Origin: Obrimoposthia wandeli
Taxonomy: Eukaryota
Reading direction: 5' to 3'
DNA: 64,000 nt
NCBI GenBank assembly: GCA_977020255.1
Contig: CDROCS010000252.1
Span: 1-64,000 of the forward strand
Shown here: positions 5,826 through 36,302 of the stretch, piece by piece
Numbering within the stretch: position 1 is the first letter of the stretch
Layout of the letters: each line of letters starts with the position of its first letter
The notes under the pieces: model-generated
Database searches by the model: none
What the model was told of the DNA's origin: nothing
What the model saw: only the letters and a program-made list of their open reading frames with translations
Made by a program: the position numbers and the translations under genes

Positions 5826-6521
5826 TTAGCTAGTAGCTTGCGTTGGCTGACGACGTAATAACAAGATAATAACTAATAATAGTAGAAGACCAATTAGACA
5901 CAGTAAGCCAATAATAAACAGACTATTATCAGAATCTTTATTCTCGATAAGATTTATGTCCGAGGCTTGCTGACCTAATTTACGCTCTACTGGTTTAAAG
6001 CCATTTGAGATACTAACTTGAGCAATAGATAGAGCGGGCTCGACTAATATTTGAGAAGGATATGATACTTCAACAACTTTACCTGACTGAGTACCGAATT
6101 TAATATTAGCGAGTTCAATGTTAACGGCTTTATTGGTTTTAGTAGAAAATCCAATACGAGCAAGATGTCCCTCCCCCATTACGGGCTCCGACGGTTTTAA
6201 TAAGCTAATAGCGTAACGGATTCGTCCCGTTCTAACATCGACATTATTTGCAATTTCATAAGCAGACTCTGAAAAAAACTCACCCTTTTGAATTTGTGGT
6301 CCAGATAGTTTCGAATTGACATCAACGACAGATAAAGCCTCATTTGAATAAAAGACTTCCAACTCCATACCATAGGAAGCAGGTATATTTTCTCCGTGAA
6401 AATCTAACCAACGAATACCATCAAGGTCTTCCGTTGAAACTTGTATTCGTCCTTCACCTAGAGCAAGACTTGATAATAAGAATAAAGAGAGTGATAAAGA
6501 TAGAGATAAAAGGTACTTCAT
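5826..6521 (-). CDS. Signal peptide + single cohesin-like domain + C-terminal transmembrane anchor
   Basis: YGMELEVFY..LSVVD..QIQKGEFF..NNVD..GRIRYAISLLKP.EPV.GEG.LARI.F pattern typical of non-cellulosomal cohesin domains; hydrophobic LFIIGLLCLIGLLLLLVIILLL followed by RR. Confidence 0.78.
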   Translation of the reverse strand: MKYLLSLSLSLSLFLLSSLALGEGRIQVSTEDLDGIRWLDFHGENIPASYGMELEVFYSNEALSVVDVNSKLSGPQIQKGEFFSESAYEIANNVDVRTGRIRYAISLLKPSEPVMGEGHLARIGFSTKTNKAVNIELANIKFGTQSGKVVEVSYPSQILVEPALSIAQVSISNGFKPVERKLGQQASDINLIENKDSDNSLFIIGLLCLIGLLLLLVIILLLRRQPTQATS

Positions 6522-6538
6522 AGTTCTTCCTTAAAATA

Positions 6539-6565
6539 TGATCCCGAACCAACTGTTCGAGATCA
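6539..6565 (-). terminator. Stem-loop between paralog A and the cohesin anchor gene
   Basis: Minus strand TGATCTCGAAC-AGTTG-GTTCGGGATCA followed by TATTTT, immediately before the AAGGAAG RBS. Confidence 0.6.
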
Positions 6566-6587
6566 CATTATCTAACAAGTTAACTCA

Positions 6588-8702
6588 TCACTGCAATGGA
6601 TTACATTGAGTAGAACCAAAATGGCTACCCAAAATCGCCAAATCCTGAATATTAATGGTGCCATCCTTATTCAAATCGGCTTTAGCATCATAGTCTGCAT
6701 CACCTTGATTTGAACGATAACGTGCAGCCATAAAAGTAAAGTCTGCAATATCAATACTACCATCGGCATTAACATCGCCTGCTAACAGCTCAATTGAGCC
6801 AAGATCTACAGCAGCACCTTCTTCAATATTCGCTGCCTGACAGCTTTGAACGTAATTTTCAGAAGCCAAACTAATAATGAATTCACCATCACGCAAGCCA
6901 TCAAACTCAAAACGTCCTGTTTCATCGGTAATTACAGTAACCTGACGGCCATCGATCGTTAAGACGACTTCAATGCCCGAATAATCTGAAACACCTGGTA
7001 TCTCAATCACACCCGATACCGAACCTGAGCCGCCATGTACACCGTCATCGATACGGATTGTGGCTGGAGTTAAAGCGACTTGTAATAGCTGGCCATTTTC
7101 ATCAGATATTTCAGCTGCACAAGTAATTTGAACATCTCCCGTAGTAAAATCAGCGATAACATCCGCTAGTACAAAACTACCAGTACCTGCGAAGGACAAT
7201 TCAGGTGCAACTAAAGTTTCAGTTCCTGTCACAGAGCTAGCGCTATACATTAATGGCAAAGTCATCGAGTTCTGAGAACCGAATAAGCCATTATAGCTGG
7301 CCTGGGTTACAGATAAAGAAGCACTTGAAAGATTACAGCTAACATCTAAGCCGTAGATATCAGTACCTGAAACATCGATTGAGAATTCCGATAGCTGGCT
7401 GGCATACGGGTCAATCACAGAGATTGCAGGAGTAATTACGATTTCATTCCCAGCCTTAGACTTCAAACTTAACCAGCTTAAGCTGGATTCAAACTTAATG
7501 TCATTTTCAACTTTTTTCATAATGAGGTCATAAACAATAGCAATATCACCATCTATAGAAAGTTGATCGATTAATTTTGTTTGGAACTCTGTGGCATTTG
7601 GATCTTCAGGGAAAATGGCATTACGGTCGACTACCTGATCTGATTCAAAGTCGTATAGATAAAATTCAGTTCCACCAACCTCATCATCTGTTCCATTATC
7701 ACTACGTACATATTGAACGAGTCCGTTATTAGTCAATAATCGAGGTAATAAGCCACCATAACCGAAGACATCAAACGGCACCTTATGCTCAACAATATTT
7801 GAAGCTATTGTATCAATTAATAGTATAACCAACTCACCCTCATCATTTCTTGCAGGTAAGGTTATATATTTACCATTATTTGAGATCAAAGCCGTATGCT
7901 GGATACCCTTAGTAATATTGATGTCATAAGTTAAAGGGATTAGATCTCTTATCGATAATAAATTCCTAGTCACTACATTGTATTTGTAAAATCGACTAGC
8001 ACCTTCCAAACTTTTAGATTCATAATCTGCCTGTAATATCATATCTCCTTGGTTATTAATATCTAAACCATGAGCCCCAGATAGCTTTTCTAAATTTACA
8101 ACATTTCCATTTAATAAAGTATGAGAGACTGGAACCAGCGTTTCTTCATTACTTAGCTTATTGAAAATTAATGTATTACCACCTCTATCATATTTTAGAA
8201 ATTGACCATTGGGAGATACCGACCATAATGTTTCCACATCAGACTTATAGATTGATATTTCCTGACTGATGAAACTGTATCGATAAGCTATACTCGAAGT
8301 CACACTGCTATTAACTTGGACTTCATGAGTGAACAAAATACTTCCTGCTGTCTCATCTTCGAAGAATATAAGTGAAAATGACATTCCATTTTTTTTAGAA
8401 TTTTTCATAATACGAGCAGATGATAAAGTTATATTTGAAATCCTATCATATCGGTGAATAATATAATCGACAGTCAAAGGGTCAACTACATTTTCATGCT
8501 CGGTTACATAAACAATATATTTACCATTCGACGTGATATCAGTTCCTGTTCCTCGTAAAAATAATAAAGACACCATAGGTTTATTACCCTGATCGCCTAA
8601 ACTTACCCCATCAAAATTAGGATTTACAGGAAAGCTTTCTGGTATGACTGCAGATGAAATCTGCACTATAAATAGTAAAATAAACGTGGTGAGTAGTCGC
8701 AT
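6588..8702 (-). CDS. Secreted modular protein A: propeller-like N-domain + cohesin-like + X-module + dockerin
   Basis: Sec signal MRLLTTFILLFIVQISSA; repeats S[NP]NG[KQ][YF]; C-terminal GDVNADGSIDIAD...ADLNKDGTINIQD duplicated Ca-binding dockerin loops. Confidence 0.85.
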   Translation of the reverse strand: MRLLTTFILLFIVQISSAVIPESFPVNPNFDGVSLGDQGNKPMVSLLFLRGTGTDITSNGKYIVYVTEHENVVDPLTVDYIIHRYDRISNITLSSARIMKNSKKNGMSFSLIFFEDETAGSILFTHEVQVNSSVTSSIAYRYSFISQEISIYKSDVETLWSVSPNGQFLKYDRGGNTLIFNKLSNEETLVPVSHTLLNGNVVNLEKLSGAHGLDINNQGDMILQADYESKSLEGASRFYKYNVVTRNLLSIRDLIPLTYDINITKGIQHTALISNNGKYITLPARNDEGELVILLIDTIASNIVEHKVPFDVFGYGGLLPRLLTNNGLVQYVRSDNGTDDEVGGTEFYLYDFESDQVVDRNAIFPEDPNATEFQTKLIDQLSIDGDIAIVYDLIMKKVENDIKFESSLSWLSLKSKAGNEIVITPAISVIDPYASQLSEFSIDVSGTDIYGLDVSCNLSSASLSVTQASYNGLFGSQNSMTLPLMYSASSVTGTETLVAPELSFAGTGSFVLADVIADFTTGDVQITCAAEISDENGQLLQVALTPATIRIDDGVHGGSGSVSGVIEIPGVSDYSGIEVVLTIDGRQVTVITDETGRFEFDGLRDGEFIISLASENYVQSCQAANIEEGAAVDLGSIELLAGDVNADGSIDIADFTFMAARYRSNQGDADYDAKADLNKDGTINIQDLAILGSHFGSTQCNPLQ

Positions 8703-8902
8703 ATTAAATCTCTTTTTTTTATGAGACGCGACTCTAAAAGAAGAGAGTAAAAAAAAGAATACCTGACTTTACGATAAGCTTAGATATACTAAATAAGTAC
8801 CAGTGAATAATTATTGTACTATCCAATTCACATTAATAACGTAATCGTTTAGAAATTAAATATTCGGCCTCAAAAATATTTGAGACCGACGTACTAATTA
8901 AT
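8703..8902 (-). promoter_or_regulatory. Duplicated intergenic cassette copy 1 (terminator of B + promoter of A)
   Basis: Colinear with 11012-11208: ACTCTAAA, AAAAGAAT.C..G.CTTTAC, TATACTAAATAAGTACC, TTATTGTACTATCCAATT, TCGGCCTCAAAA..GACCGACGTACT. Confidence 0.75.
8864..8889 (-). terminator. Stem-loop terminator after paralog B
   Basis: Minus strand TCGGTCTCAAA-TATT-TTTGAGGCCGA then AT-rich tract. Confidence 0.6.
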
Positions 8903-11023
8903 TTACAAATTACATTGAGTTGAACCAAAATGGCTACCCAAAATTGCTAAATCTTGAATATTAATCATACCATCTTTATTCAAATCAGCTTTAGCATCAT
9001 AATCAGCATCTCCTTGATTAGAACGATAACGCGCGGCCATAAAAGTAAAGTCTGCAATATCAATACTACCATCAGCATTAATATCACCCGCCAATAGCTC
9101 AATCGAACCTAGATCAACTGCACCACCTTCCGCGACATTAGCAACCTGACAACTTTGTACATAATTTTCAGAAGCTAGGCTAATCGTAAAGTCACCATCG
9201 CGCAAACCTTCAAATTCAAAACGCCCTGCTTCATCGGTAATAACTGTGACTTGACGACCATCAATCGTTAAAACAACTTCGACACCGGAAAGGTCGGTAA
9301 TACCCGGAATTTCAATGACACCCGATACCGAACCTGAGCCACCATGAACACCATCATCGATACGGATTGTCGCTGGCGTCAAAGTAACTTTTAACAGCTG
9401 GCCTTTTTCATCAGAAACTTCAGCTGCACACATAATTTGTACATCTTCCGTGGTGAATTCTGCGATAACATCTGCCAACACAAAGCTACCTGAACCAGTG
9501 AAAGGTAATTCAGGTGCAACCAGAGTTTCAGTTCCTGTCACAGAGATAGCGTCATAAATTAAAGGCAGAGTCATAGTATTTTGAGAGCCAAACAAAGCAT
9601 CATAGTTGGCCTGGGTTACAGATAAAGAAGTACTTGAAAGGTTACAACTAACATCTAATCCATAAATATCAGTCCCAGATACATCGATAGAGAATTGTGA
9701 AGTTTGATGCGAATAAGGATCGATTATTACATCTGCAGGAGTAATGCGTATTTCGTTGTTAGTAGTCGATAAATAGGACCAAAATATCTGTATTTCAATC
9801 TCTTCTTGGCCCGAAACTATTTTTACTAAAGCGTCTATCCTTGAAACAACATCACCATCAAGTGAGATTTGATCAACCCATCTATTTTGATATTCTGTAA
9901 AATCCGAACCTACAGGAAATATAGCCCTTTCAAGTAACCGATTTGAAATGAAATCATAAAGATATAATTCTAATTCCATTTCATCCGCATTATCTAGTTT
10001 TTCATCAATCCTAAAATATTGAACAACTCCTGTATTGGTTAACAATCTAGCGGCCAAAGAGCCATTCTCGCTTAAACCGAATGGAACCTCGTGCGCTACA
10101 ATATTTAAAGTAATTGTATCTACTAACAATAATACTAACGCTCCAGTAGAGTTTCTGGCTGGTAAACTAATGTATTGGCCATTATTTGAGATTAATGGAA
10201 GATTTATTTTGGAGCTGAAAATATCTACGTTAATATCATAATCGAAACCTACTGGGATTAGGCTATCGAAAGATATGAACCCTTCTGTTTTTACATTGTA
10301 CTGATAATATTGGCTAGCACCTTCGACGCTTCCAGAATCCGAATCAATTGCCAATACCAAACTTCCTTGATCATTAATAGCATAACGAGTCAATAGACCA
10401 GGTCTCTCGAAATTCACAATATTTCCATTTGATAGAGAATAAGAAGTTGGTACTAATATATCGGTAGTACTTTCTTTATCAAAAACATATGAATTGCCAT
10501 TGTTACCGTATAAAAGAAATTGTCCATTAGGAGATATTGCCCACAATGGCCCCGTATTGGTTTTAAAAATTGAAACATCGTTACTCTCAAAGCTATATCG
10601 ATAGGTTGAATAAGATGCTTCTGTTAGATAAGTAAATACTATGCTCTGCGCAGATTCATCTTCAAATGACATTTTCAAAAATGCAGATTTATTAGTACTT
10701 TGTGGAGCTGAATTTTTCAGTATTCGATTTGACGATAATGTTGTATTCGATATACGGTCATGTCGATGAATAACATAATCGATAGTCAATGAATCTTCTA
10801 AATTTTCATGCTCAGTAACGTAGGCGATGTACCGTCCATTCGAACTAATACTTGTGGCTCCTACACCAAATCCTATTGACTGTTGAACAATTCTACTTGA
10901 ACTGCCGTGATTGATACCATCAGCATCAGGATTTATAGGATGGCTTTTGGTTAAGTCTGCAGTTGAAACCTGCAGTATAAAGAGTAAAACTAAGGCGGTA
11001 ATAAATCTCATGATATATCTCAT
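8903..11023 (-). CDS. Secreted modular protein B: propeller-like N-domain + cohesin-like + X-module + dockerin (likely start ATG 11011)
   Basis: N-domain aligns with protein A (YVTEHEN..LT.DY.IHR.DRISN.TLSS.RI.KNS); C-terminal ~285 aa about 85% identical to A by manual alignment. Confidence 0.85.
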   Translation of the reverse strand: MRYIMRFITALVLLFILQVSTADLTKSHPINPDADGINHGSSSRIVQQSIGFGVGATSISSNGRYIAYVTEHENLEDSLTIDYVIHRHDRISNTTLSSNRILKNSAPQSTNKSAFLKMSFEDESAQSIVFTYLTEASYSTYRYSFESNDVSIFKTNTGPLWAISPNGQFLLYGNNGNSYVFDKESTTDILVPTSYSLSNGNIVNFERPGLLTRYAINDQGSLVLAIDSDSGSVEGASQYYQYNVKTEGFISFDSLIPVGFDYDINVDIFSSKINLPLISNNGQYISLPARNSTGALVLLLVDTITLNIVAHEVPFGLSENGSLAARLLTNTGVVQYFRIDEKLDNADEMELELYLYDFISNRLLERAIFPVGSDFTEYQNRWVDQISLDGDVVSRIDALVKIVSGQEEIEIQIFWSYLSTTNNEIRITPADVIIDPYSHQTSQFSIDVSGTDIYGLDVSCNLSSTSLSVTQANYDALFGSQNTMTLPLIYDAISVTGTETLVAPELPFTGSGSFVLADVIAEFTTEDVQIMCAAEVSDEKGQLLKVTLTPATIRIDDGVHGGSGSVSGVIEIPGITDLSGVEVVLTIDGRQVTVITDEAGRFEFEGLRDGDFTISLASENYVQSCQVANVAEGGAVDLGSIELLAGDINADGSIDIADFTFMAARYRSNQGDADYDAKADLNKDGMINIQDLAILGSHFGSTQCNL

Positions 11024-11208
11024 TTTTTTATGAAACGAGACTCTAAAATAAGAAAATATAAAAAAGAATATCTGGCTTTACAATGTACTTATATATACTA
11101 AATAAGTACCAATTAGGAGTTATTGTACTATCCAATTGCAAGAGTAAAAGTAACAATTCAATAATAATACTCGGCCTCAAAAAAGATTAAGACCGACGTA
11201 CTTGTTAT
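11012..11208 (-). promoter_or_regulatory. Duplicated intergenic cassette copy 2 (terminator of C + promoter of B)
   Basis: Same ordered motifs as 8703-8902; ACTCTAAA is 29-36 bp upstream of the start in both. Confidence 0.75.
11171..11196 (-). terminator. Stem-loop terminator after paralog C
   Basis: TCGGCCTCAA-AAAAGA-TTAAGACCGA, homologous to 8864-8889. Confidence 0.55.
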
Positions 11209-13848
11209 TTACAAATTACACTGAGTAGAACCAAAGTGACTACCCAAGATCGCCAAATCCTGAATATTAATAGTGCCATCTTTATTCAAATCAGCTTTAG
11301 CATCATAATCAGCATCTCCTTGATTAGAACGATAACGCGCAGCCATAAAAGTGAAATCAGCAATATCGATACTACCATCAGCATTAATATCACCAGACAA
11401 CAGCTCAATTGAGCCCAAATCAACCGTACCACCCTCAGTAACATTTGCAGCCTGACAACTCTGCACGTAATTCTCAGAAGCTAAGCTAATAGTAAATTCT
11501 CCATCGCGTAATCCGTCAAATTCAAAACGACCAGTCTCGTCAGTAATTACTGTTACCTGGCGACCATCAATTGTTAGTACAACTTCAACACCTGATAAAT
11601 CAGCAACACCTTGTATTTCAATAACGCCTGATACAGAGCCTTCGCCACCGTGAACACCATCATCAATACGGATAGTTGCAGGAGTCAAAGTAACCTGAAG
11701 TAGTTGACCACGTTCATCAGACACTTCTGCAGCACAAGTAATTTGAATATCTTCAGTTGTGAATTCAGCATTGACATCAGCTAATACAAAGCTACCAGTT
11801 CCAGAAAAAGGTAATTCAGGAGCTACTAAAGTTTCAGTGCCTGTCACTGAAGAAGCATTATAGATTAACGGTAGAGTCATAGTATTTTGAAAGCCAAACA
11901 GGCCATCATAGCTGGCTTGAGTAACAGATAATGAAGAATTTGAAAGATTACAGCTAACATCTAAGCCATAAATACCTGCACCTGAAACATCAACGGTAAA
12001 CTGTGAAGTAGCATTTGAATATGGATCAATAACGGCATCTAAAGGGACGACCTTAACTTCAGTACCTTCCTGCGTATCACTAGAAACTGACGTCGTCAAT
12101 ATCCAAGTATTTGTATTACTAGTTCCTAATTCAAAAGTGAATACTCCGTCTTTTCCTAATAGTGGAGATGACGAACCGATATCATTTCCTAAAGCTTCCA
12201 ATATCATCTGAGCACGTTTATGATCAACGGCTTCCTCTAAAGTCACGTCAAAAGCAGCACCGCCACTCTCAATTTCTTCTCTAGCACTCGCAAAAGCAAG
12301 AGCGGAATATTCAGGATAATACTTAAAATAACTCGAGCTACCATCAGTATTTATTAAGCTATCCAACAATTCATTTTTTTTATTTTCTGAAAGGTTGTTG
12401 AGCATATACTTAGCAACCTCTGTATAAACACTAGCACCACTACCATCTTCAATGGACTTCAAGAAAAACCCTTTGTTTTCCACAAGCCCAACAGGAGAAG
12501 CATAAACACCGGTATCACTTATTAAGTTAAATGGTGTGCTTTCAGAAAGAATTGGATAATGCCCAGTATTAACAGTATCTGAACAATAAAGATTATTAGT
12601 TTCTGCATAGAAGCCTGCTTCTATATCATCATTCCGATTCATTGCCTCCATCGTGTCGTTAAAATACGGAGCAAGCACTCCTTCATATTCCGCTTGGGAC
12701 ATACCCGCATAAAAAGGATTCCCAACATGATCTAGAGCTTCATCTGATGGTAGGTTTGGATAACTATTAATAATTTCTAATGTATTCGGATCTGAAATAC
12801 CTTCTGTCTCTACTATTACTTCCTTAGCATCTTCAATTGTGAATCTTGCCACTTTAGGATTTTGGCCACGAACATTTGATAGAGTCTCAGATTTTTCGCA
12901 AACAGTATGCTTAAGCAGAGGAGATTGGAGCCCTGCATCATAAGACGAAAGGTAATAGTTGTAATTATTAGTTGTTGAAATTAAAGAAATACTATTATCA
13001 GGCAATGAACGTATAGGATCTAAAACGGGACCACCATCCGGTAAATTAAAAACTTGCCCTTGGTAGTGTAAAGTAGGCTCAACCTCATCACTAATATACA
13101 CCATCCCTAAACTTCCAGAACCAGCAGGAATCGAATATGTAGAACCATTCGGATAAACTAAACTATAGCTTTGAGTATTATAGGAAGGAGTGTGTACGAC
13201 ATAACCACTATCATTAACATAACGAGTCATACCTGGAGCAAATGTATCACCCCCTTCATCATTTTGACCCGTTAGCACTGTGTCACATGTTTCGATATAT
13301 GAATCAATATTACTCGTAAGCTCACTTAGCTTACATCGATAAACAGTTCTTGATGCAGTAGGTCCTTTCGAAAAAACAAAATAGTCACCAGCAACACCTT
13401 TGGGCACATAGCCAGTTCCAGAAGCTAGAATCACTGAATTACCGCGTAATTTAGCTTCTGAATTAGCCATAAATTCGCGAGCGATATCTTGATATTCAAT
13501 ATTGGTTGATGTAACACTTAATCCAATACTAGAGAATTCACTTGGATTATTTGGTAAATTAGGAAAATTCTCAAAAAAAGAAGACATAATATTTTCTGAA
13601 TTAACTACTTCTTGAATAATTTCTTCTTGAGTAAAAGAAACACTCCCGTTGATGACTTCAAAACCACCAGCAGTGTACAGAGTACCAAACTGACGAACTA
13701 TATAACCAGTTTCTTCACTTCTACCAACAATACTACCCTCAGAAGAAAACGCTAAATGTTTAATCCCTGTAATACTAACCCCAGCATCAACACTAGCTGA
13801 CAATCCAGCTAAGATTGTTGCAGTTCCTATGAGCAACTTTTTCATCAT
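11209..13848 (-). CDS. Secreted modular protein C: unrelated ~590 aa N-region + cohesin-like + X-module + dockerin
   Basis: Sec signal MMKKLLIGTATILAGLSASVDA; same C-terminal block ending GDINADGSIDIAD...DLNKDGTINIQDLAILGSHFGSTQCNL. Confidence 0.85.
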   Translation of the reverse strand: MMKKLLIGTATILAGLSASVDAGVSITGIKHLAFSSEGSIVGRSEETGYIVRQFGTLYTAGGFEVINGSVSFTQEEIIQEVVNSENIMSSFFENFPNLPNNPSEFSSIGLSVTSTNIEYQDIAREFMANSEAKLRGNSVILASGTGYVPKGVAGDYFVFSKGPTASRTVYRCKLSELTSNIDSYIETCDTVLTGQNDEGGDTFAPGMTRYVNDSGYVVHTPSYNTQSYSLVYPNGSTYSIPAGSGSLGMVYISDEVEPTLHYQGQVFNLPDGGPVLDPIRSLPDNSISLISTTNNYNYYLSSYDAGLQSPLLKHTVCEKSETLSNVRGQNPKVARFTIEDAKEVIVETEGISDPNTLEIINSYPNLPSDEALDHVGNPFYAGMSQAEYEGVLAPYFNDTMEAMNRNDDIEAGFYAETNNLYCSDTVNTGHYPILSESTPFNLISDTGVYASPVGLVENKGFFLKSIEDGSGASVYTEVAKYMLNNLSENKKNELLDSLINTDGSSSYFKYYPEYSALAFASAREEIESGGAAFDVTLEEAVDHKRAQMILEALGNDIGSSSPLLGKDGVFTFELGTSNTNTWILTTSVSSDTQEGTEVKVVPLDAVIDPYSNATSQFTVDVSGAGIYGLDVSCNLSNSSLSVTQASYDGLFGFQNTMTLPLIYNASSVTGTETLVAPELPFSGTGSFVLADVNAEFTTEDIQITCAAEVSDERGQLLQVTLTPATIRIDDGVHGGEGSVSGVIEIQGVADLSGVEVVLTIDGRQVTVITDETGRFEFDGLRDGEFTISLASENYVQSCQAANVTEGGTVDLGSIELLSGDINADGSIDIADFTFMAARYRSNQGDADYDAKADLNKDGTINIQDLAILGSHFGSTQCNL

Positions 13849-15537: not shown

Positions 15538-15921
15538 ATGACAGCGCACATGACTGCCCAAATTTTTACCATTGGTGAGCTTGCCCAAGAGTTTGATACC
15601 ACGACCCGAGCCATTCGCTTTTATGAGGATCAGGGCTTAGTCAGTCCCCTGCGCGAAGGACAAAAGCGTATTTACAGCACGGCAGACCGCATTACTATTA
15701 AGCTTATTATGCGCGGAAAGCGGCTGGGATTTTCTTTAGCAGAGAGTAAAGAACTGATCGATTTGTACAATACAGAAGGTGATAACCGAGCACAGCACAT
15801 GCGAGTTTTAGAACAAGTTAAGGCCAGTCGTGACCGTTTATTACAACAAAAAACAGATATTGAAATAATGTTGCTTGAACTTGAAGAACACGAAAATAGA
15901 ATAAAAGCAGATATGGAATAA
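15538..15921 (+). CDS. liuR: MerR-family regulator of leucine/isovalerate utilisation
   Basis: FTIGELAQEFDTTTRAIRFYEDQGL, RGKRLGFSLAE; heads the liu cluster. Confidence 0.9.
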   Translation: MTAHMTAQIFTIGELAQEFDTTTRAIRFYEDQGLVSPLREGQKRIYSTADRITIKLIMRGKRLGFSLAESKELIDLYNTEGDNRAQHMRVLEQVKASRDRLLQQKTDIEIMLLELEEHENRIKADME

Positions 15922-15977
15922 GCTTTTTAATGACTGCGTAAACAACACCTAACTAAGAACACAATAAAAATAAATTC

Positions 15978-17192
15978 TTGAGGTATCCCATGAACTACAC
16001 ATCTACTCCTAATAAGTCGTCGTACCAAGAACTCAATTTTGGCCATGGCGAAACGATCGACATGCTACGCGCCAGTGTGAATGCGTTTGCGGCAAAAGAA
16101 ATCGTTCCACTCGCGGATCAAACGGATAAAGAAAATGCCTTTCCGAATCAGCTGTGGAAAAAGTTTGGCGATATGGGCTTGCTAGGTATGACGGTGAGTG
16201 AAGAGTTTGGTGGTACTGACATGGGCTATTTGGCTCATACCATTGCGATGGAAGAAATCAGCCGCGCATCCGCTTCTATTGGTTTAAGTTATGGTGCTTT
16301 TTCAAACTTATGCGTCAATCAAATATTTCGTAACGGCAGCCAAGCACAAAAAGAAAAGTACTTACCAAAGCTGGTGTCTGGCGAACACATTGGTGCATTA
16401 GCCATGAGCGAAGCGAATGCCGGTTCTGATGTTGTTAGTATGAAAATCTCTGCTAAAAAAGTCGCTAATAAAAAAGGCGACAAGTACATTTTAAACGGCA
16501 ATAAAATGTGGATCACCAACGGCCCAGATGCGAATACCTATGTCATTTATGCTAAAACAGATATGGAAAAAGGCGCCCACGGTATTACGGCTTTTATTGT
16601 TGAGCGTGATTCCAAAGGTTTCACTCAAGGCGAAAAGCTGGATAAATTAGGCATGCGCGGCTCCAATACTTGCGAGCTTATTTTTCAAGATTGTGAAGTA
16701 CCGGAAGAAAACATTCTGGGTGGCTTAAACCAAGGCGTAAAAGTATTAATGAGCGGGTTAGATTATGAGCGCGTCGTTTTATCCGGCGGCCCAACGGGTA
16801 TTATGCAGGCTTGTATGGACATTGTTGTTCCGTACATTCACGACCGCGAACAGTTTGGTAAAAGCATCGGTGAATTCCAACTCGTCCAAGGAAAAATTGC
16901 CGACATGTATTCCAGCATGAATGCCTGTAAATCTTATTTGTATGCAGTAGCAGCGGCTTGTGATCGTGGCGAAACTGCGCGAAAAGATGCCGCTGGGGTT
17001 ATTTTATACTGCGCCGAAAAAGCCACCCAAGCAGCTCTCGATGCAATTCAATTACTCGGTGGTAATGGTTATATTAATGATTATTCTACCGGTCGTTTAT
17101 TACGCGATGCCAAGTTATATGAAATTGGCGCCGGTACCAGCGAAATTCGTCGCATGTTAATTGGTCGTGAAATTTTCGCGGAAACCAAATAG
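15978..17192 (+). CDS. liuA: Isovaleryl-CoA dehydrogenase (likely start ATG 15990)
   Basis: [56 protein letters not shown]. Confidence 0.95.
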
Positions 17193-17250
17193 CCTCTAGA
17201 TTAATAGTGCACTGAATAAACAGCACCGAATAACAGGAGCGATCTGACTC

Positions 17251-18861
17251 ATGCCAGTATTAAAAACTTCCGCGAATGCTAATAGCGAAGAGTTTAAAAA
17301 GAATAAACAACACAACCTTGATCTTGTTGATGATCTTTACCAACACATTGAAATCATAAAACAAGGCGGTGGTGAAAAGTCACTTGCCCGTCATATTAGC
17401 CGTGGCAAGTTACCGCCGCGCGAACGGGTAAATAAATTACTCGATGAAGGCGCTCCGTTTTTAGAAATTGGTCAGCTAGCCGCCTTAGGCGTTTATGCTG
17501 ACAATATTCCTGGCGCGGGTGTGATTGCAGGTGTCGGCCGAGTCTCTGGTGTTGAGTGCATGATCGTCGTCAACGACGCGACTGTAAAAGGCGGAACCTA
17601 TTATCCACTGTCAGTTAAAAAGCATTTGCGTGCACAAGAAATTGCTGCGAAAAATCGTTTACCTTGCATCTATTTAGTCGATTCTGGCGGTGCCAATTTA
17701 CCGCAGCAAGCTGAAGTTTTTCCAGACCGAGATCATTTTGGTCGCATCTTTTTTAATCAAGCTAATATGTCAGCTCGTGGTATTCCACAAATTGCAGCAG
17801 TAATGGGTTCTTGTACTGCAGGCGGCGCTTATGTGCCTGCGATGAGCGACGAATCGATTATTGTAAAAGAACAAGGTACGATTTTTCTTGCGGGGCCACC
17901 CTTAGTAAAAGCGGCGACGGGGGAAGAAGTCAGCTCAGAGGATTTAGGCGGCGGCGATATGCATACCCGGATATCCGGTGTTGTTGATCATCTGGCAGAA
18001 GATGATGAGCATGCTCTTGCCCTCGTTCGACAAGCGGTTAAAAATCTTAATTGGCAAAAGCCGATTGCAATGAATCTTGCAAGCCAAGTTAATGAACCGC
18101 TTTACCCTGCCGAAGATTTATACGGCCTAGTGCCCACCGATTTAAAGAAACCTTTTGATGCGCGCGAACTCATTGCGCGTTTATTAGATGGTTCTGAATT
18201 TGATGAATATAAAGCACGCTTTGGTACAACACTTGTTTGCGGCTTCGGTTCTCTTTATGGCTACCCTGTCGGCATCGTTGCCAATAACGGCATATTGTTT
18301 TCAGAGTCAGCACAAAAAGGTGCTAATTTTATTGAGCTATGTTGCCAACGAAAAATCCCATTATTATTTTTACAAAATATCACCGGCTTTATGGTCGGTC
18401 AGAAGTATGAACAAGAAGGCATTGCTAAACATGGCGCTAAAATGGTGAACGCTGTTGCTTGTGCAAAGGTGCCTAAATTGACGTTAGTCTTTGGTGGTAG
18501 CTTTGGTGCAGGGAATTATGGAATGTGTGGTCGAGCATACGATCCAAACTTTATGTTCATGTGGCCTAATGCTCGCATCTCCGTAATGGGCGGCGAGCAA
18601 GCCGCCAGTGTAATGGCACAAGTGACTCGCGATGCAAAAGAAAAACGCGGTGAGACTTGGTCTGCGGAAGAAGAAAGCCAGTTTAAACAACCTCTGCTTA
18701 AAAAATATGAAGACGAAGGCCATCCCTATTACGCCAGTGCCCGCTTATGGGATGATGGCATTATTGATCCTGCACAGAGCCGCGAAGTATTAGGTCTCGC
18801 CCTATCTGCTTGTTTAAATGCACCCATTGAAGAGACGCAGTTTGGCGTCTTTAGAATGTAG
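17251..18861 (+). CDS. liuB: 3-methylcrotonyl-CoA carboxylase beta subunit
   Basis: [45 protein letters not shown]. Confidence 0.96.
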
Positions 18862-18864
18862 AGG

Positions 18865-19698
18865 TTGAAGATCATGACAGATAATACGTCTCTAACAGCG
18901 CCTTTAGCCTCTCCGTTATTAGTTGAACATGATAACGGCGTTACCACACTGACGCTAAACCGTCCGGCAATTAATAATGCCTTCGATGACGAAATGATTA
19001 GCTTAATGATTATGGCGTTAGACGACTGCCGCCTTAATGATGATGTCAAAGTGGTTAAACTAACCGGAGCTGGAAAACACTTTTCTGCCGGAGCCGATCT
19101 TAATTGGATGCGCCGCATGGCCGATCTTGATTACAGTGAAAACCGAGAAGATGCCGGGCAACTCGCTCGATTAATGAGCACCCTTTACCATTTAAACAAA
19201 CCAACTATTGCTCAAATAAGTGGCGCTTCGTATGGCGGTGCTATTGGGCTTATCGCTTGCTGTGATATTGCCATCGCCAGCGAGAAAAGTATTTTTTGTT
19301 TAAGCGAAGTTAAAATTGGATTAATACCCGCCGTTATCAGCCCTTATGTGGTAAAAGCCATTGGCGAGCGCCAAGCTCGCCGATACTTTATCACTGGCGA
19401 AGTGATTAAATCTGAACAAGCACTCACACTGGATTTAATCCACGAAATCGTTCCCTCAGAAAATCTAAACTTTCGGGTCGATGAGATAGTTTCGTCCATG
19501 CTCAATAATGGCCCCAAAGCGATGGGCATGAGTAAAGCACTGGTACAAAAAGTTGCTAATGAGACACTGGACGAAAACCTGATCCATCATACTCGTGATC
19601 TTATTGCTCAAATTCGTGTATCAGAAGAAGGCCAAGAAGGCTTATCTGCCTTTTTAGAAAAACGCCCTGCTAACTGGATAAAGGCGAACTCAAAATGA
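18865..19698 (+). CDS. liuC: Methylglutaconyl-CoA hydratase
   Basis: HFSAGADLNWM, FCLSEVKIGLIPAVISPYV; position in liu operon. Confidence 0.92.
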   Translation: MKIMTDNTSLTAPLASPLLVEHDNGVTTLTLNRPAINNAFDDEMISLMIMALDDCRLNDDVKVVKLTGAGKHFSAGADLNWMRRMADLDYSENREDAGQLARLMSTLYHLNKPTIAQISGASYGGAIGLIACCDIAIASEKSIFCLSEVKIGLIPAVISPYVVKAIGERQARRYFITGEVIKSEQALTLDLIHEIVPSENLNFRVDEIVSSMLNNGPKAMGMSKALVQKVANETLDENLIHHTRDLIAQIRVSEEGQEGLSAFLEKRPANWIKANSK

Positions 19699-21848
19699 AT
19701 TCTTCGACCATAAAGAAAACAGCGATCACTAAAATCCTGATTGCCAACCGCGGTGAAATTGCTTGCCGAATTATTCATACGGCAAAAAAGATGGGCATAA
19801 AAACCGTTGCTATTTATTCAACCGCCGATGCTCAATCAAAGCACGTTCAGCTTGCCGACGAAGCCGTTTGGATTGGTGAAGCCGCGCCTAAAGACAGTTA
19901 TTTACGCGGTGAAAATATCATTCAAGCCGCTAAAGACTCTGGTGCCCAAGCTATTCACCCAGGTTATGGTTTTTTATCTGAGAATGCGCCTTTCTCAAAA
20001 CTTTGTGACGATAACCAGCTCATTTTCATTGGTCCACCGGCCAGCGCAATGGAAGCCATGGGACTGAAGGCCCAAGCAAAAATCCGTATGGAGGCAGCAA
20101 ACGTTCCTCTTGTGCCTGGCTATCATGGCGACGATCAATCTGTTGAAAGAATTAAACAAGCCTGTCTTGAAATTGGCTTTCCTGTTTTATTAAAAGCTTC
20201 CGCCGGTGGTGGTGGTAAAGGCATGCGAGTTGTTGAATCATTAGAAAGCATTGAAGATGATATTGCTGGCGCGCAACGTGAAGGTTTAAATTCTTTTGGT
20301 GATAGCCATTTATTAGCTGAAAAATATTTGGCAAGACCGCGGCATATTGAAATTCAATTATTCTGTGATCAACAAGGCAATGGCGTTTATTTATTTGAGC
20401 GTGATTGTTCTATTCAACGTCGCCATCAAAAAATTGTTGAAGAAGCACCCGCGCCAAATTTCCCTGAATCTATTCGTCAAGCGATGGGTGAAGCCGCACT
20501 GAAAGCCGCTCATGCGATTGGCTATGTCGGCGCTGGAACCGTTGAATTTTTGTATGAAAATGGTGAGTTTTATTTCATGGAAATGAATACTCGCTTACAA
20601 GTAGAGCACCCTATTTCTGAATACATTACAGGACAGGACTTAGTCGCGTGGCAAATTAAAGTCGCGGCGGGCGAACCACTTCCGGTTACCCAAGATGATC
20701 TGAAGATTCATGGTCATGCAATTGAGGTGCGCTTATACGCTGAAGATCCCGATAATAATTTCTTACCGACAGCCGGAAAAATTGACGATTTTATTTACCC
20801 TGAATCGAGCCATTTCGGATTAGATTATGAACAGGGTATTCGCATGGATACGGGGGTTGTTTCAGGCGATGAGGTTTCGCCTTTTTATGATCCGATGATT
20901 GCTAAGTTAATTGTTTGGGGCAAAGATCGTAGTACTGCTATTCGCAAACTCAAGAATGCCCTACATCATACTCATATCACGGGTTTAACTAACAACATAC
21001 GTTATTTAGAAAAACTAATCGGTCTTGAGTCGTTTGGAGAAGCCAAGCTTGATACTCACTTTGTTGAAGATAATGCTGAGGCGATAAAAGCCAGTGGAAT
21101 ATTATCTGCACAACAACTGCGTTTGCATCAAATCTTTGCCGCTTGGACGCTGTATCAACAGCGTTCAGATGAAAGCCATAATGATAATAGCCAAAATAAA
21201 ATTCAGTCGAATGATGTTCATTCTCCGTGGAAAATGAAAAACGGCTGGCGACTGAATGGTGGCCATAGCGACCCGATAATTTTATTGGCACCTGAAGAAA
21301 CTACGATTCAGTTTCAGCCTCTGCCGTCTGGTAATTATTCGGTCTTGCTTGGCGAGCATCGCTATACCCTTCAAGCGCCTGCAGAGTTATGTGCTCAGTC
21401 TAATCCAACGAATCTAAGCTTGATGATTAAAAGTTCTAATCTCAACGATACTAATCAAAACGGCACAAATCACAGCAGCACTGACCAAAACAATTTAGAG
21501 CAATCAATCAAGGCACAAGTTTTATTCACTAGCGATAAAATCCAAGTGCACAGCCATTATGGCAGCAGTGAATTTATTCAGCCTGCGCGCTTAACGACCA
21601 GTCAGAATGAAGAAGAAAACGAACAGGGCTTACATGCACCGATGAATGGTTGCCTTACCGAAGTTCGAGTTAAAAGTGGTGATCAGGTTAATCGCGGAGA
21701 TGTTCTCGTGATAATGGAAGCGATGAAAATGGAGCATACGATCAAGGCACCACATGACGGCACCATCGCCGAGATATTTTTCAAGCAAGGTGATCTTATC
21801 GACGAAGGTCGTGAGATTCTTTCTTTCTTAGATGAAAGTGAAGAATGA
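19695..21848 (+). CDS. liuD: 3-methylcrotonyl-CoA carboxylase alpha (biotin) subunit
   Basis: ANRGEIA, GGGGKGMR, MNTRLQVEHP, biotin site EAMKMEH. Confidence 0.95.
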   Translation: MNSSTIKKTAITKILIANRGEIACRIIHTAKKMGIKTVAIYSTADAQSKHVQLADEAVWIGEAAPKDSYLRGENIIQAAKDSGAQAIHPGYGFLSENAPFSKLCDDNQLIFIGPPASAMEAMGLKAQAKIRMEAANVPLVPGYHGDDQSVERIKQACLEIGFPVLLKASAGGGGKGMRVVESLESIEDDIAGAQREGLNSFGDSHLLAEKYLARPRHIEIQLFCDQQGNGVYLFERDCSIQRRHQKIVEEAPAPNFPESIRQAMGEAALKAAHAIGYVGAGTVEFLYENGEFYFMEMNTRLQVEHPISEYITGQDLVAWQIKVAAGEPLPVTQDDLKIHGHAIEVRLYAEDPDNNFLPTAGKIDDFIYPESSHFGLDYEQGIRMDTGVVSGDEVSPFYDPMIAKLIVWGKDRSTAIRKLKNALHHTHITGLTNNIRYLEKLIGLESFGEAKLDTHFVEDNAEAIKASGILSAQQLRLHQIFAAWTLYQQRSDESHNDNSQNKIQSNDVHSPWKMKNGWRLNGGHSDPIILLAPEETTIQFQPLPSGNYSVLLGEHRYTLQAPAELCAQSNPTNLSLMIKSSNLNDTNQNGTNHSSTDQNNLEQSIKAQVLFTSDKIQVHSHYGSSEFIQPARLTTSQNEEENEQGLHAPMNGCLTEVRVKSGDQVNRGDVLVIMEAMKMEHTIKAPHDGTIAEIFFKQGDLIDEGREILSFLDESEE

Positions 21849-21861
21849 TTAAGGAAAGAAA

Positions 21862-22785
21862 ATGAAGTATCCAGATTCAGTGCGTATTGTCGAAGTCGGC
21901 CCAAGGGATGGTTTGCAAAATGAACAGCAGCCTATCTCTACAGCGGATAAAATCGAACTGATTCAGCGCTTAGCTCACGCTGGGATTGCCCATATTGAAG
22001 CAGGCAGTTTTGTATCCCCTAAATGGGTGCCACAAATGGCTGACTCGCTAGACGTTATGCTCGGCATTGAGCGCAAGGATACTGTGCGTTACGCCGCACT
22101 CACGCCCAATAAACGAGGATTCGATCAGGCCATTGCAGCGAATGCGACTGAAGTCGCTATCTTTGCCGCCGCTTCTGAAAGCTTCAGTCAAAAAAATATC
22201 AATTGCTCGATTGCTGAAAGCTTACAGCGCTTTGAAGAAATCATGGCCGCCGCAAAAGCCAAGAACATTCCTGTGCGCGGTTATGTTTCTTGCATATTGG
22301 GCTGCCCTTACGAAGGCCCCATAACCGAGCAGAACGCAGAAATTCATTTTGCTAAAGTAAAACAGGTTAGCCAGAAATTATTAGAGATGGGCTGCTATGA
22401 AGTCTCTCTTGGCGATACCATTGGCACAGGAACGCCGACGTTTACCGAACAACTTTTACAGACATTATTAGAAGACATTCCAAGCCATCAGCTCGCCGTG
22501 CACTTTCACGATACCTATGGCCAAGCACTGAGTAATATTTTAGTCGCACTGCAAAATGGCATTGCGACCATCGACTCTTCTATTGCCGGTTTAGGCGGCT
22601 GCCCGTATGCTGAAGGTGCCTCTGGCAATGTGGCTACTGAAGATGTGCTCTACATGCTAGAAGGTATGAATATTAAAACGGGCATTGAATTCAATAGTCT
22701 GATTAATACCGGTAATTGGATAAGCCAAAAACTGAAGCGTATTAATGGCTCCAAAGTCGGTCTGGCGCTTAGCTCCTTTCGCTAG
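21862..22785 (+). CDS. liuE: Hydroxymethylglutaryl-CoA lyase
   Basis: EVGPRDGLQNE, SLGDTIG, HFHDTYGQAL, GLGGCPYA.GASGNVATED. Confidence 0.95.
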   Translation: MKYPDSVRIVEVGPRDGLQNEQQPISTADKIELIQRLAHAGIAHIEAGSFVSPKWVPQMADSLDVMLGIERKDTVRYAALTPNKRGFDQAIAANATEVAIFAAASESFSQKNINCSIAESLQRFEEIMAAAKAKNIPVRGYVSCILGCPYEGPITEQNAEIHFAKVKQVSQKLLEMGCYEVSLGDTIGTGTPTFTEQLLQTLLEDIPSHQLAVHFHDTYGQALSNILVALQNGIATIDSSIAGLGGCPYAEGASGNVATEDVLYMLEGMNIKTGIEFNSLINTGNWISQKLKRINGSKVGLALSSFR

Positions 22786-34238: not shown

Positions 34239-36302
34239 ATGATGAGTCTAAAACTTGAGAATACTAAAATGTCGACCTTTCCAAGGCTCGCATTAATATC
34301 CGTCATCGCACTCACATCTGCCTGCGGCAATAACGATGCCTTAGTTACAGCCCCTGGCGCTGACCAGCAAGGCCATACCGCGCCAACTGCGGCGACAATA
34401 AAAGCTAATAAAAGCGTCCTTGAACAACTTCCTTTCGGCAATCAGCAAGATTTTGAAGATGCCAACCGTGGACTTATTGCTAGCCTAGATTCTCTGGTCA
34501 CTAAAAATGCCGCTGGCGAAAGCATTTGGGACATGGATGCCTACGACTTCATCGAATATAAAGGCGTCGACGGCCAAGCCCCAGACAGTGTTAATCCTAG
34601 TTTATGGCGTCAGGCTAGCCTGAACAACATTCACGGCCTGTTTAAGGTCAGCGAAGGTATTTATCAATTGCGTGGTTTCGATCTTGCTAATATGACGCTG
34701 ATTGAAGGTGACAAAGGCTGGATCGTTGTTGATCCGTTAACTGCAAAAGAAACCTCTAAAGCGGCTTTCGCTTTCGCTCAAAAACATCTTGGCACAAAGC
34801 CCATCACGGCTATCTTGTTTACCCATAGCCACCTAGATCATTTTGGTGGCGCTTTAGGCTTAGTTACCTCAGAACAAGTAAAGCAGCAAGGCATACGAAT
34901 TATTGCTCCCGAAGGCTTTATGGAAGAAGCAACCAGTGAAAATATCATTGCTGGTACTGCCATGAGTCGCCGTGCCATGTTGATGTATGGTAAACGACTA
35001 GCGCGTACCGAACGTGGACATGTAGGAACAGGCCTAGGCAAAGGGCCAGCATTTGGCTCATTCAGTATTTTAGAGCCGACTGAGCTGGTGAATTCGACAA
35101 CGTCAGAAGTCGAAGTGGATGGTATTCGCTTTGAATTTCAATATACCCCTGGTTCTGAAGCCCCAGCCGAATTCACCTTTTACTTGCCCGATCATAAAGC
35201 CTTTTGCGGTGCGGAAGTTGTCTCTCGCAATATGCACAACCTCTATACGTTACGCGGGGCTAAAGTACGTGATGCATTGAAGTGGAGCAGCTACATTGAT
35301 GAGGCTCGCATACAATTCTCCAGCGCAGAGTCTTATTTTGGTAGCCATCACTGGCCAATGTGGGGACAAGAGAACATTCAGAATTTCTTGAAGCTGCAGC
35401 GCGATGGTTATAAATACATACACGATCAAAGCGTGCGCTTATTTAATGGCGGCGCGACGCCCAATGAAGTAGCTGAGCAAATTACCTTACCTGAAACCTT
35501 AAGCACTTCATTTCCGAACCGAGGTTATTACGGCACGCTTAAACATAATGCCAAAGCCGTTTACCAAAACTACTTAGGCTGGTACGACGCTAATCCCGCT
35601 AACCTTGATCCATTACCACCACAGAATAGTGCCCAACGTTATATCAAGTTAATGGGCGGCATTGAGCAAGTCGTTGTACAAGCGCAAATCGCATTTGATC
35701 AGGCAGAGGAAGATGCCGGTGCCTATCGCTGGGTTGCTGAGTTATTGAATAAAGCGGTCTTTGCCGACCCTGACCATAAAGCCGCCAAAGCCTTATTGGC
35801 AAAAACCTACGATCAACTTGGCTATCAATCTGAATCAGCGCCTTGGCGTGATGTGTATTTAAGTGCTGCGTATGAGCTGCGCCACGGTGGACCCGAGAAA
35901 GGCATCGACATTGCGTTAATGCGTGAAATCCTACTAGAAACTCCGGTAGACCGCTTCTTTGATACCTTATCGATTCGTTTAAACGGTCCAAAAGCAGAAG
36001 GCAAAGATTATGCAATTAAGATCAACCTCACCGATAAAGACCTTAGCTATGTGCTGAATTTAGAAAACTCCGTACTGTATCACCAGAGTGCCGAGTCTTG
36101 GCAGAACAAAACGGCTGGCCCCATTAACGCCACCTTAAATGTTAAGCACGAACTCTTTATCGATATGCTCATCGGTCGCGCAGGATTGAAGAAGACCCTA
36201 TTCTCTGACGATCTAACCATTGATGGCAGCAAGCTTGATCTACTGGGCTTCTTAAGCTTATTTGATCGCCCAATGGGAGATTTCAATATCGTTGTCCCAT
36301 AG
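34239..36302 (+). CDS. Alkyl/aryl sulfatase (SdsA1/BDS1-like), probable lipoprotein
   Basis: DFEDANRGLIA, SLWRQA, THSHLDHFGG, HNLYTLRGAKVRD, GYYG; C-terminal SCP2-like domain; LTSAC lipobox-like. Confidence 0.92.
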   Translation: MMSLKLENTKMSTFPRLALISVIALTSACGNNDALVTAPGADQQGHTAPTAATIKANKSVLEQLPFGNQQDFEDANRGLIASLDSLVTKNAAGESIWDMDAYDFIEYKGVDGQAPDSVNPSLWRQASLNNIHGLFKVSEGIYQLRGFDLANMTLIEGDKGWIVVDPLTAKETSKAAFAFAQKHLGTKPITAILFTHSHLDHFGGALGLVTSEQVKQQGIRIIAPEGFMEEATSENIIAGTAMSRRAMLMYGKRLARTERGHVGTGLGKGPAFGSFSILEPTELVNSTTSEVEVDGIRFEFQYTPGSEAPAEFTFYLPDHKAFCGAEVVSRNMHNLYTLRGAKVRDALKWSSYIDEARIQFSSAESYFGSHHWPMWGQENIQNFLKLQRDGYKYIHDQSVRLFNGGATPNEVAEQITLPETLSTSFPNRGYYGTLKHNAKAVYQNYLGWYDANPANLDPLPPQNSAQRYIKLMGGIEQVVVQAQIAFDQAEEDAGAYRWVAELLNKAVFADPDHKAAKALLAKTYDQLGYQSESAPWRDVYLSAAYELRHGGPEKGIDIALMREILLETPVDRFFDTLSIRLNGPKAEGKDYAIKINLTDKDLSYVLNLENSVLYHQSAESWQNKTAGPINATLNVKHELFIDMLIGRAGLKKTLFSDDLTIDGSKLDLLGFLSLFDRPMGDFNIVVP

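Follow-up and report, generated by a model that had tools for sequence, protein, structure and literature searches.

Cohesin-dockerin pairs are the textbook case of modular extracellular assembly and a workhorse of synthetic biology, and functional knowledge of them comes almost entirely from the cellulosomes of anaerobic Firmicutes. We describe here a locus of four genes at positions 5826-13848 of a 64,000-nucleotide stretch (the window) of contig CDROCS010000252.1, from assembly GCA_977020255.1 of Obrimoposthia wandeli. Three large proteins encoded there (subunits p704, p706 and p879) share a C-terminal cassette of predicted cohesin, X module and dockerin (Coh-X-Doc), and a fourth, small protein (the anchor) carries a predicted single cohesin on a membrane helix. 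Contig JBALXI010000011 of the metagenome-assembled genome (MAG) "Oleispira sp. isolate 9NakV-01" matches the anchor locus at 100% identity. Oleispira belongs to the Oceanospirillales and is Gram-negative, psychrophilic and hydrocarbon-degrading.

The C-terminus of CipA from C. (Acetivibrio) thermocellum (3kcp, 4fl4, 2b59) contains a cohesin, an Ig-like X module and a dockerin with two calcium loops in the same order as the cassette described here, and its Coh9-X-DocII is the best structural match of the cassette and among its best sequence matches. In the CipA system, as in this locus, a separate protein (SdbA, OlpB or Orf2p) carries a cohesin on an envelope anchor, and the broad profile built from relatives of our anchor (A3, defined below) is closest to type II cohesins. 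The locus differs from the CipA system in lacking a carbohydrate-binding module (CBM), a type I cohesin array and glycoside hydrolases that bear dockerins. Its cassette is joined to propeller or orphan heads, a membrane helix takes the place of SLH repeats, and the host is an aerobic marine diderm, so that the likely compartment is the periplasm. Defined as dockerin-bearing carbohydrate-active enzymes (CAZymes) on a multi-cohesin scaffoldin with a CBM, a cellulosome is not what the locus encodes.

In Ruminococcus flavefaciens, the ScaE/X-dockerin (CttA, ScaB) and autonomous CohG-XDoc (4wkz) systems likewise combine an X-dockerin (X-Doc, XDoc) dyad with a single-cohesin envelope protein, as is predicted for docking here, and 4wkz_B is among the structural cohesin matches of our proteins (Z 11.2). 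They differ in that sortase fixes ScaE to a Gram-positive wall, the X module is inserted differently and the system belongs to a fiber-degrading cellulosome. Cohesin and dockerin stand in the same polypeptide in Archaeoglobus fulgidus, as in the subunits described here. That system (2xdh) is also non-cellulosomal, and the internal cohesin of our subunits matches 2xdh at Z 15.6, but it is archaeal, has no X module and lacks a neighboring, dedicated, membrane-anchored single-cohesin partner. Among diderms, a predicted cohesin-dockerin pair is encoded by the neighboring genes Cag_2037 and Cag_2038 of Chlorobium chlorochromatii, with binding inferred from modeling only (bioRxiv 10.64898/2026.03.19.712371). 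These are giant RTX/BIg proteins taken to the cell surface by type I secretion, and they lack an X module, a membrane-helix anchor and a cassette that combines cohesin and dockerin.

Cohesin and dockerin modules outside cellulosomes are known from all three domains of life, where they are widespread (Peer et al. 2009, as cited in PMC6487960). An earlier note on this DNA, made by a model from the sequence, knew of no characterized equivalent in Gammaproteobacteria, and our literature search likewise turned up no report of such a system from Oleispira or any other gammaproteobacterium. The system does not stand alone, as such modules have long been known outside cellulosomes and the sandwich-X-dockerin cassette also occurs on uncharacterized proteins of Chloroflexota, Bacillota, Armatimonadota, Planctomycetota and Bathyarchaeota, where it is fused to pectate-lyase-like, beta-helix, nitroreductase or cadherin-like parts. 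New here are a type II-style X-Doc/anchor pair whose cargo consists of propellers and an orphan domain, the predicted helical inner-membrane anchor in a diderm, and the conservation of the gene pair.

Four genes and a shared C-terminal cassette

The four co-oriented genes announced in the earlier note were recovered as open reading frames (ORFs) at exactly its coordinates, all on the minus strand. Their lengths are given in amino acids (aa):

5826..6521, minus strand: anchor gene, 231 aa, with signal peptide, single predicted cohesin, linker, C-terminal membrane helix and RRQ tail
6588..8702, minus strand: subunit p704, 704 aa, with signal peptide, beta-propeller head, predicted cohesin, X module and dockerin
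8903..11023, minus strand: subunit p706, 706 aa, a p704 paralog (heads 48% identical)
11209..13848, minus strand: subunit p879, 879 aa, with an orphan head of ~570 aa followed by predicted cohesin, X module and dockerin

The sequence motifs quoted in that note are present as well, and the C-terminal block that it saw in the three paralogs measures 273-290 aa, with 86-88% identity at the protein level and 79-82% at the DNA level. Between the paralogous cassettes, synonymous divergence (dS) is 1.0-1.6, near saturation, and the ratio of nonsynonymous to synonymous divergence (dN/dS) is 0.05-0.07. Therefore, the copies are old and have been kept by purifying selection, consistent with a conserved function. 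Recent gene conversion or recent copying as the cause of cassette identity is ruled out by the dS values. The internal cohesin is also under purifying selection. No further dockerin or cohesin was found in the 64-kb window beyond the four genes. The modules of the cassette are placed as follows:

6591-7460, minus strand: p704 cassette, C-terminal
7047..7439, minus strand: p704 internal cohesin-like module, residues 422-552 (model, structure alignment and hhalign)
6783..7028, minus strand: p704 X module, residues 559-640, a CarboxypepD_reg-like Ig fold (sequence and structure matches)
6612..6782, minus strand: p704 dockerin, residues 641-697, with two calcium loops and a conserved C-terminal QC motif (PF00404, E 9.9e-10)
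9356-9748, 9092-9337 and 8921-9091, minus strand: p706 predicted cohesin, X module and dockerin (paralog alignment)
11662-12054, 11398-11643 and 11227-11397, minus strand: p879 predicted cohesin, X module and dockerin (paralog alignment)

The dockerin, in which the earlier note had seen two calcium-binding loops, matches Pfam Dockerin_1 (PF00404) in three of three subunits at 35.2-38.9 bits against a curated cut-off of 22.9, and two canonical D-x-N-x-D-G-x-I-D/N-x-x-D calcium loops, DVNADGSIDIAD and DLNKDGTINIQD, can be read directly. A CarboxypepD_reg-like module, scoring below the Pfam cut-off, lies directly N-terminal to it. The resemblance to the X-module/type II dockerin dyad of CipA, which the note had drawn, was found by sequence and by structure. 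In a phmmer search of the Protein Data Bank (PDB), such dyads were the top matches (E 6e-11 to 1e-9), with alignments spanning both X module and dockerin, in the order 4wi0_B (6.3e-11), CipA 2b59_B (1.8e-10), and then 5k39, 4u3s and 3kcp. An AlphaFold2 (AF2) model of the cassette (last 290 residues, 29 sequences) reached a mean predicted local distance difference test score (pLDDT) of 90.9 and a predicted template modeling score (pTM) of 0.76, with the dockerin helices visible and the internal cohesin at pLDDT >90. Foldseek placed CipA Coh9-X-DocII (3kcp_A) first for this model (E 4.6e-21), followed by three 4fl4 chains. VIA-align likewise gave Z 18.1 to 3kcp_A, Z 16.4-16.9 to XDoc dyads, with a root-mean-square deviation (rmsd) of 2.0-3.3 Å over 136-142 residues at 25-32% identity, and Z 14-15.6 (rmsd 2.4-3.4 Å) between residues 1-140 of the block and many solved cohesins.

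The internal cohesin has no Pfam or PDB sequence match of its own, either directly or in a PDB profile search. In structure, that of p704 aligns at Z 15.6 with CaCohA2 (6kgf_C) and with A. fulgidus 2xdh (rmsd 2.6-3.4 Å over 128-134 residues). For sequence comparison we used three profiles, A1 (the close anchor family), A2 (the anchor cohesin domain only) and A3 (a broad family built from the A2 matches). By hhalign the internal cohesin matches the broad A3 profile with 96% probability (E 1e-9, 125-131 columns), and its comparison with the narrow A2 profile was not significant, so that internal and anchor cohesins are linked only via the broad cohesin profile. By profile and model comparison, the internal module is assigned as a very divergent cohesin, with putative dockerin binding, and the cassette as a predicted cohesin, X module and dockerin. 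At long range the dockerin is the best-conserved domain of the cassette, at 65% identity vs 44% for the X module and 30% for the internal cohesin.

Two features of the cassette were noted in passing. A DDG(V/I)HGG stretch at the cohesin-X junction (7029-7049 in p704, with equivalent sites in p706 and p879) is near-invariant, even in relatives of 31% identity, and a metal site, a hinge or a processing site are possibilities. Four cysteines are also near-invariant: the internal cohesin has two, the X module a third and the C-terminal S-T-Q-C (QC) motif the fourth; the last two could form a disulfide clasp that locks the dockerin to the X module.

The anchored cohesin and the conservation of the gene pair

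The fourth gene was described in the earlier note as one cohesin-like domain plus a membrane anchor. This description is borne out by profile chaining and by a hydrophobic helix followed by the RRQ tail, and the protein can be divided as follows:

6456..6521, minus strand: signal peptide, residues 1-22, cysteine-free (direct reading, hydropathy)
6027..6455, minus strand: predicted cohesin domain, residues 23-165, ~143 aa (profile chaining, ESM Atlas)
5829..6026, minus strand: linker 166-200, membrane helix ~201-222 and basic tail RRQPTQATS (hydropathy, conservation)

Hydropathy peaks at 3.49 over residues 196-227, and L206, L207, L213, L221 and R223 are invariant among orthologs. Searches of Pfam, NCBIfam and PDB with the anchor alone or as profile A1 returned membrane-helix noise only, and none of the 19 clusters that make up the close anchor family has a Pfam match. 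A search of 1.84 billion representatives with the domain profile A2 returned 1531 proteins at E<=1e-3, and in many of these several stretches matched. PF00963 (Cohesin) was present in 61 of 70 sampled A2-matched domains, with linking E values down to 1e-20 and below. When the broad profile A3 was compared with the PDB, type II cohesins came first (ScaB 3l8q 2.7e-13, 5g5d_A 2.3e-8, SdbA 2b59_A 2.7e-6), and type I cohesins appeared only at E above 0.05. A single ortholog, P0021 of locus L011, passes the Pfam Cohesin cut-off by itself (35.7 bits). In the ESM Atlas, the anchor scored 0.93 for features, with 195 shared, and its model (pTM 0.62) reached template modeling (TM) scores of 0.53-0.64 to cohesin clusters. 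As judged by this chain of profiles, the anchor protein is a predicted cohesin of a type II-like lineage on a C-terminal membrane helix.

No SLH, LPXTG/Gram_pos_anchor, PEP-CTERM, GlyGly-CTERM or other curated sorting model in Pfam or NCBIfam matches the anchor, and the distant orthologs have no conserved motif ahead of the helix; a known C-terminal sorting signal was rejected on these grounds. Lipoprotein anchoring was rejected as well, as no signal peptide of the four proteins contains a cysteine. Surface-anchoring scaffoldins of the SdbA/OlpB/ScaE type carry SLH repeats or a sortase (LPXTG) signal, in place of which the anchor has a plain hydrophobic helix with the RRQ tail. Its linker is 35 aa long in the window and ~10 aa in the L011 ortholog.

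Relatives of the anchor provided three further observations. The signal peptide contains an SLSLSLSL stretch (6482-6510) encoded by an imperfect 6/12-nt repeat, and this stretch is four residues longer in the window, P0001 and P0002 than in other orthologs. P0033 (624 aa, JGI) resembles a mini-scaffoldin, with three cohesins, a CarboxypepD_reg-like X module and a dockerin, and its cohesins fall in the broad lineage of the anchor. P0020 (L013:440-3532, 1030 aa), which is not an ortholog of the anchor but ranks among the closest relatives of its cohesin (E 1.5e-62), has an N-terminal TIR domain followed by five cohesins. Its neighbors are an HNH_2 protein and the gene of a HepT-like toxin, a setting for cohesins that resembles a defense island.

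The arrangement of a head-Coh-X-Doc gene followed by a small anchored cohesin recurs in seven other loci (L002, L003, L004, L007, L008, L009 and L011). In each of the seven the small downstream protein has a signal peptide, cohesin, membrane helix and basic tail. Oleispira-like MAGs share the same chromosomal site, with one to three subunits and then the anchor. The arrangements are:

window: one long and two short subunits, then anchor
L003: long and short subunit, then anchor
L004: long subunit, then anchor
L002: short subunit, then anchor, at a contig end
L007, L008, L009 and L011: distant contigs, a Coh-X-Doc protein and then a 190-217 aa protein matching A2 at E 1e-14 to 1e-57

Where measured, anchor identities across the paired loci are ~50-80%, and profile scores point to lower values in the most distant loci. 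L007 is Bacterioplanes-like, as its RF3 gene clusters at 90% identity with a Bacterioplanes sp. protein. These comparisons show the gene pair to be conserved across Oceanospirillales-like genomes.

Predicted docking, location and rival explanations

On balance, we lean towards reading the locus as a docking system of the cell envelope that is built from cohesin and X-dockerin but is not a cellulosome, in which the XDoc of the subunits would sit on the anchor cohesin, on the periplasmic side of the inner membrane. The three Sec-exported subunits each have a head and a Coh-X-Doc cassette, and by analogy with CipA XDocII and SdbA or OlpB their X-dockerins would dock in a calcium-dependent manner onto the anchor cohesin. 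Docking would tether the heads to the membrane. The subunits' own acidic and divergent cohesins might add further subunits, bind in cis, or serve as a stalk only. Net charge is -12 to -13 in the internal cohesins (1-4 basic residues) vs -6 in the anchor cohesin (13 basic residues), and XDoc is acidic; this contrast is a weak hint that slightly favors the anchor cohesin as the XDoc partner.

We would place the complex on the periplasmic face of the inner membrane rather than at the cell surface because the host is a diderm, the C-terminus is an alpha-helical type I membrane segment with a positive tail, the linker is 10-35 aa long, and neither a lipobox nor a barrel is present. Here our reading departs from the earlier note, which had proposed a surface assembly: a helical anchor with a basic tail, and with no lipobox, SLH, sortase or C-terminal sorting signal, points to an inner-membrane anchor in a diderm. 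Calcium at seawater level and a disulfide-forming compartment would suit the pair of calcium loops and the conserved cysteines, which are paired.

Several observations weigh against this reading. Pfam Cohesin has no direct match in the window's own anchor sequence, the identity of which rests on profile chaining and the Atlas model. We found no precedent for periplasmic cohesin-dockerin complexes, and judging from the 64-kb window the subunits may take a type II secretion route. None of the RNA runs examined contained this DNA; contigs from marine metatranscriptomes match relatives only, at 80-93% over 150-740 nt, and thus give no evidence of transcription of this locus. The type strain O. antarctica RB-8 (L006) retains, at the same site as the window locus, a single, intact short subunit, OLEAN_C27190, annotated solely as a dockerin domain-containing protein, with no anchor gene beside it. 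This gene lies only 49 bp from that of the beta-lactamase fold, and a six-frame comparison of the 22-kb locus with the anchor profile gave no match. The RB-8 subunit may work without an anchor, or the anchor may be elsewhere in the RB-8 genome. L010, with a conserved dockerin, and L012 also have no adjacent anchor. Within the close set, the dockerins of RB-8, P0206 and P0207 diverge most, with calcium-loop position 9 as one example, and, in favor of the preferred reading, divergent dockerins occur in two of the three anchor-less loci (RB-8 and L012). That dockerin divergence tracks anchor loss is only suggestive, because the L010 dockerin is conserved.

The RB-8 locus (L006:8679-13267, FO203512.1) has a Transposase_mut fragment upstream of the subunit and a different flank on the glutathione S-transferase (GST) side; in this strain, the only one that has been studied well, it looks rearranged or degenerate.

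Three other explanations were considered. The subunits might form a head-to-tail polymer, in which the internal cohesin binds the X-dockerin of the next subunit to give a calcium-dependent filament or lattice, primed by the anchor cohesin and with long and short subunits as alternative blocks. In its favor, cohesin fold and XDoc occur together in every subunit, purifying selection acts on the internal cohesin, one to three subunits accompany each anchor across genomes, and proteins of the P0033 type, with three cohesins, X module and dockerin, exist among anchor relatives. However, the internal cohesin has diverged past sequence detection in Pfam and PDB and changes much faster than the dockerin (30% vs 65% identity at long range), it is acidic like its would-be partner XDoc, and its equivalent in CipA, Coh9, is not known to bind CipA's own type II dockerin. 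We regard such a polymer as unlikely. Its periplasmic form, in which an inner-membrane cohesin nucleates calcium-dependent head-to-tail Coh-X-Doc chains into a propeller-studded scaffold within the diderm envelope, seems to us quite unlikely; if true, it would be the first cohesin-dockerin assembly to work in the periplasm rather than outside the cell.

True cell-surface display, with subunits and anchor outside the outer membrane as an exposed adhesive or enzymatic complex, would agree with the surface location of small monoderm and archaeal proteins that consist of signal peptide, cohesin and a C-terminal anchor (Gram_pos_anchor or PGF-CTERM in Atlas clusters), and with a fold resembling integrin-like and S-layer propeller-stalk proteins. 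We hold it to be very unlikely, given that the anchor is one alpha-helix with a positive-inside tail and no beta-barrel, lipobox or known sorting motif, that a linker of 10-35 aa is too short to span periplasm and outer membrane, and that no secretion genes were seen among the window neighbors of the locus. Finally, there may be no docking at all, the cassette being a calcium-stabilized stalk or ligand-binding tail, and the small cohesin protein an unrelated membrane protein kept nearby by shared ancestry or co-regulation. Many non-cellulosomal dockerin-like modules reportedly have no known cohesin partner, and the RB-8, L010 and L012 subunits stand without an adjacent anchor. Yet the pairing is kept in seven other loci even at the anchor identities given above, the dockerin is the best-conserved module, and the X-Doc superposes at 2-3 Å on dyads whose sole known role is cohesin binding, which makes this explanation highly improbable in our view.

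A full type II-style set, the Coh-X-Doc cassette with a dedicated single-cohesin anchor, is kept as a gene pair in aerobic, cold-adapted, oil-degrading marine Gammaproteobacteria, and no carbohydrate-active enzymes go with it. If the binding is true, cohesin-dockerin biology would gain a compartment and a set of cargo that are new to it, engineers of Gram-negative hosts would have a small XDoc/cohesin pair that is cold-active and naturally orthogonal, and there would be a handle on a family of orphan envelope proteins in Oleispira and its relatives.

Head domains, transcription signals and neighboring genes

The heads that would be tethered are of two kinds, placed as follows:

7458..8540, minus strand: p704 head, ~seven four-stranded blades, residues ~55-415 (AF2 model)
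12079-13782, minus strand: p879 head, ~570 aa, an orphan with four conserved cysteines

A full-length AF2 model of p704, built from alignment A6, has a pLDDT of 80.7, with blocks of the head mostly at 75-95, and the heads of p704 and p706 are roughly seven-bladed beta-propellers. Foldseek matches of the p704 model include integrin-alpha propellers, the YVTN S-layer propeller 1l0q, DPP4 and long ulvan lyases, all at TM <0.4; as these matches are generic, no catalytic assignment is justified. Weak PD40 hints were seen in p706 and the L002 ortholog only. Long-isoform ulvan lyases from marine Alteromonas, Glaciecola and Pseudoalteromonas can be aligned with the p704 model over the greater part of the model (Foldseek E 4e-12, TM <0.3), and going by this match the propeller might be a polysaccharide lyase-like domain.

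The p879 head has no match in Pfam, PDB profile or Atlas searches, and a homolog search gave no annotation. It is found only in this family, where it is homologous to the heads of the 896-aa subunit of L003 and the 902-aa subunit of L004 (hhalign 100%), and it is unrelated to the p704 and p706 heads (hhalign E 0.68). One homolog of this head, P0224 (503 aa, NCBI; 45% identity over 80%), seemingly lacks the cassette or is an incomplete protein. Pfam and family searches found no glycoside hydrolase, carbohydrate esterase, polysaccharide lyase or CBM family in any of the four proteins, in agreement with the earlier note, which had reported no glycoside hydrolase domains. The heads are most likely binding modules, and they may have an enzymatic role.

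A hairpin lies 3' of every large gene (p704, p706 and p879). The hairpins are:

11171..11196, minus strand: terminator-like hairpin after p879, near-identical to that 3' of p706
8864..8889, minus strand: terminator-like hairpin directly after p706 (hairpin scan)
6533..6564, minus strand: imperfect 10-bp hairpin with a T-rich run between p704 and the anchor (seen by eye; absent from the hairpin scan list)

Those 3' of p706 and p879 both read TCGGTCT...GAGGCCGA, and presumably these near-identical hairpins were duplicated together with the genes. The third sits just upstream of the anchor's AAGGAAG ribosome-binding site. Promoter-like matches were at chance level (36 found vs 33 expected).

GC content is 0.32-0.39 inside the locus vs 0.41-0.47 for most flanking kilobases. 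The four genes are embedded among housekeeping genes, with a metallo-beta-lactamase-fold gene, an enoyl-CoA hydratase gene, a queE-like gene, queC and argG on one side, and genes for GST, TetR, MerR and acyl-CoA dehydrogenase on the other. Further along the window, positions 15538-22785 encode a MerR-type regulator, acyl-CoA dehydrogenase, carboxyltransferase, enoyl-CoA hydratase, biotin carboxylase with a biotinyl domain and an HMG-CoA-lyase-like protein, a layout typical of a leucine/isovalerate (liu) catabolic cluster. Positions 34239-36302 encode a 687-aa protein of the alkyl/aryl-sulfatase type (metallo-beta-lactamase, Alkyl_sulf_dimr and Alkyl_sulf_C).

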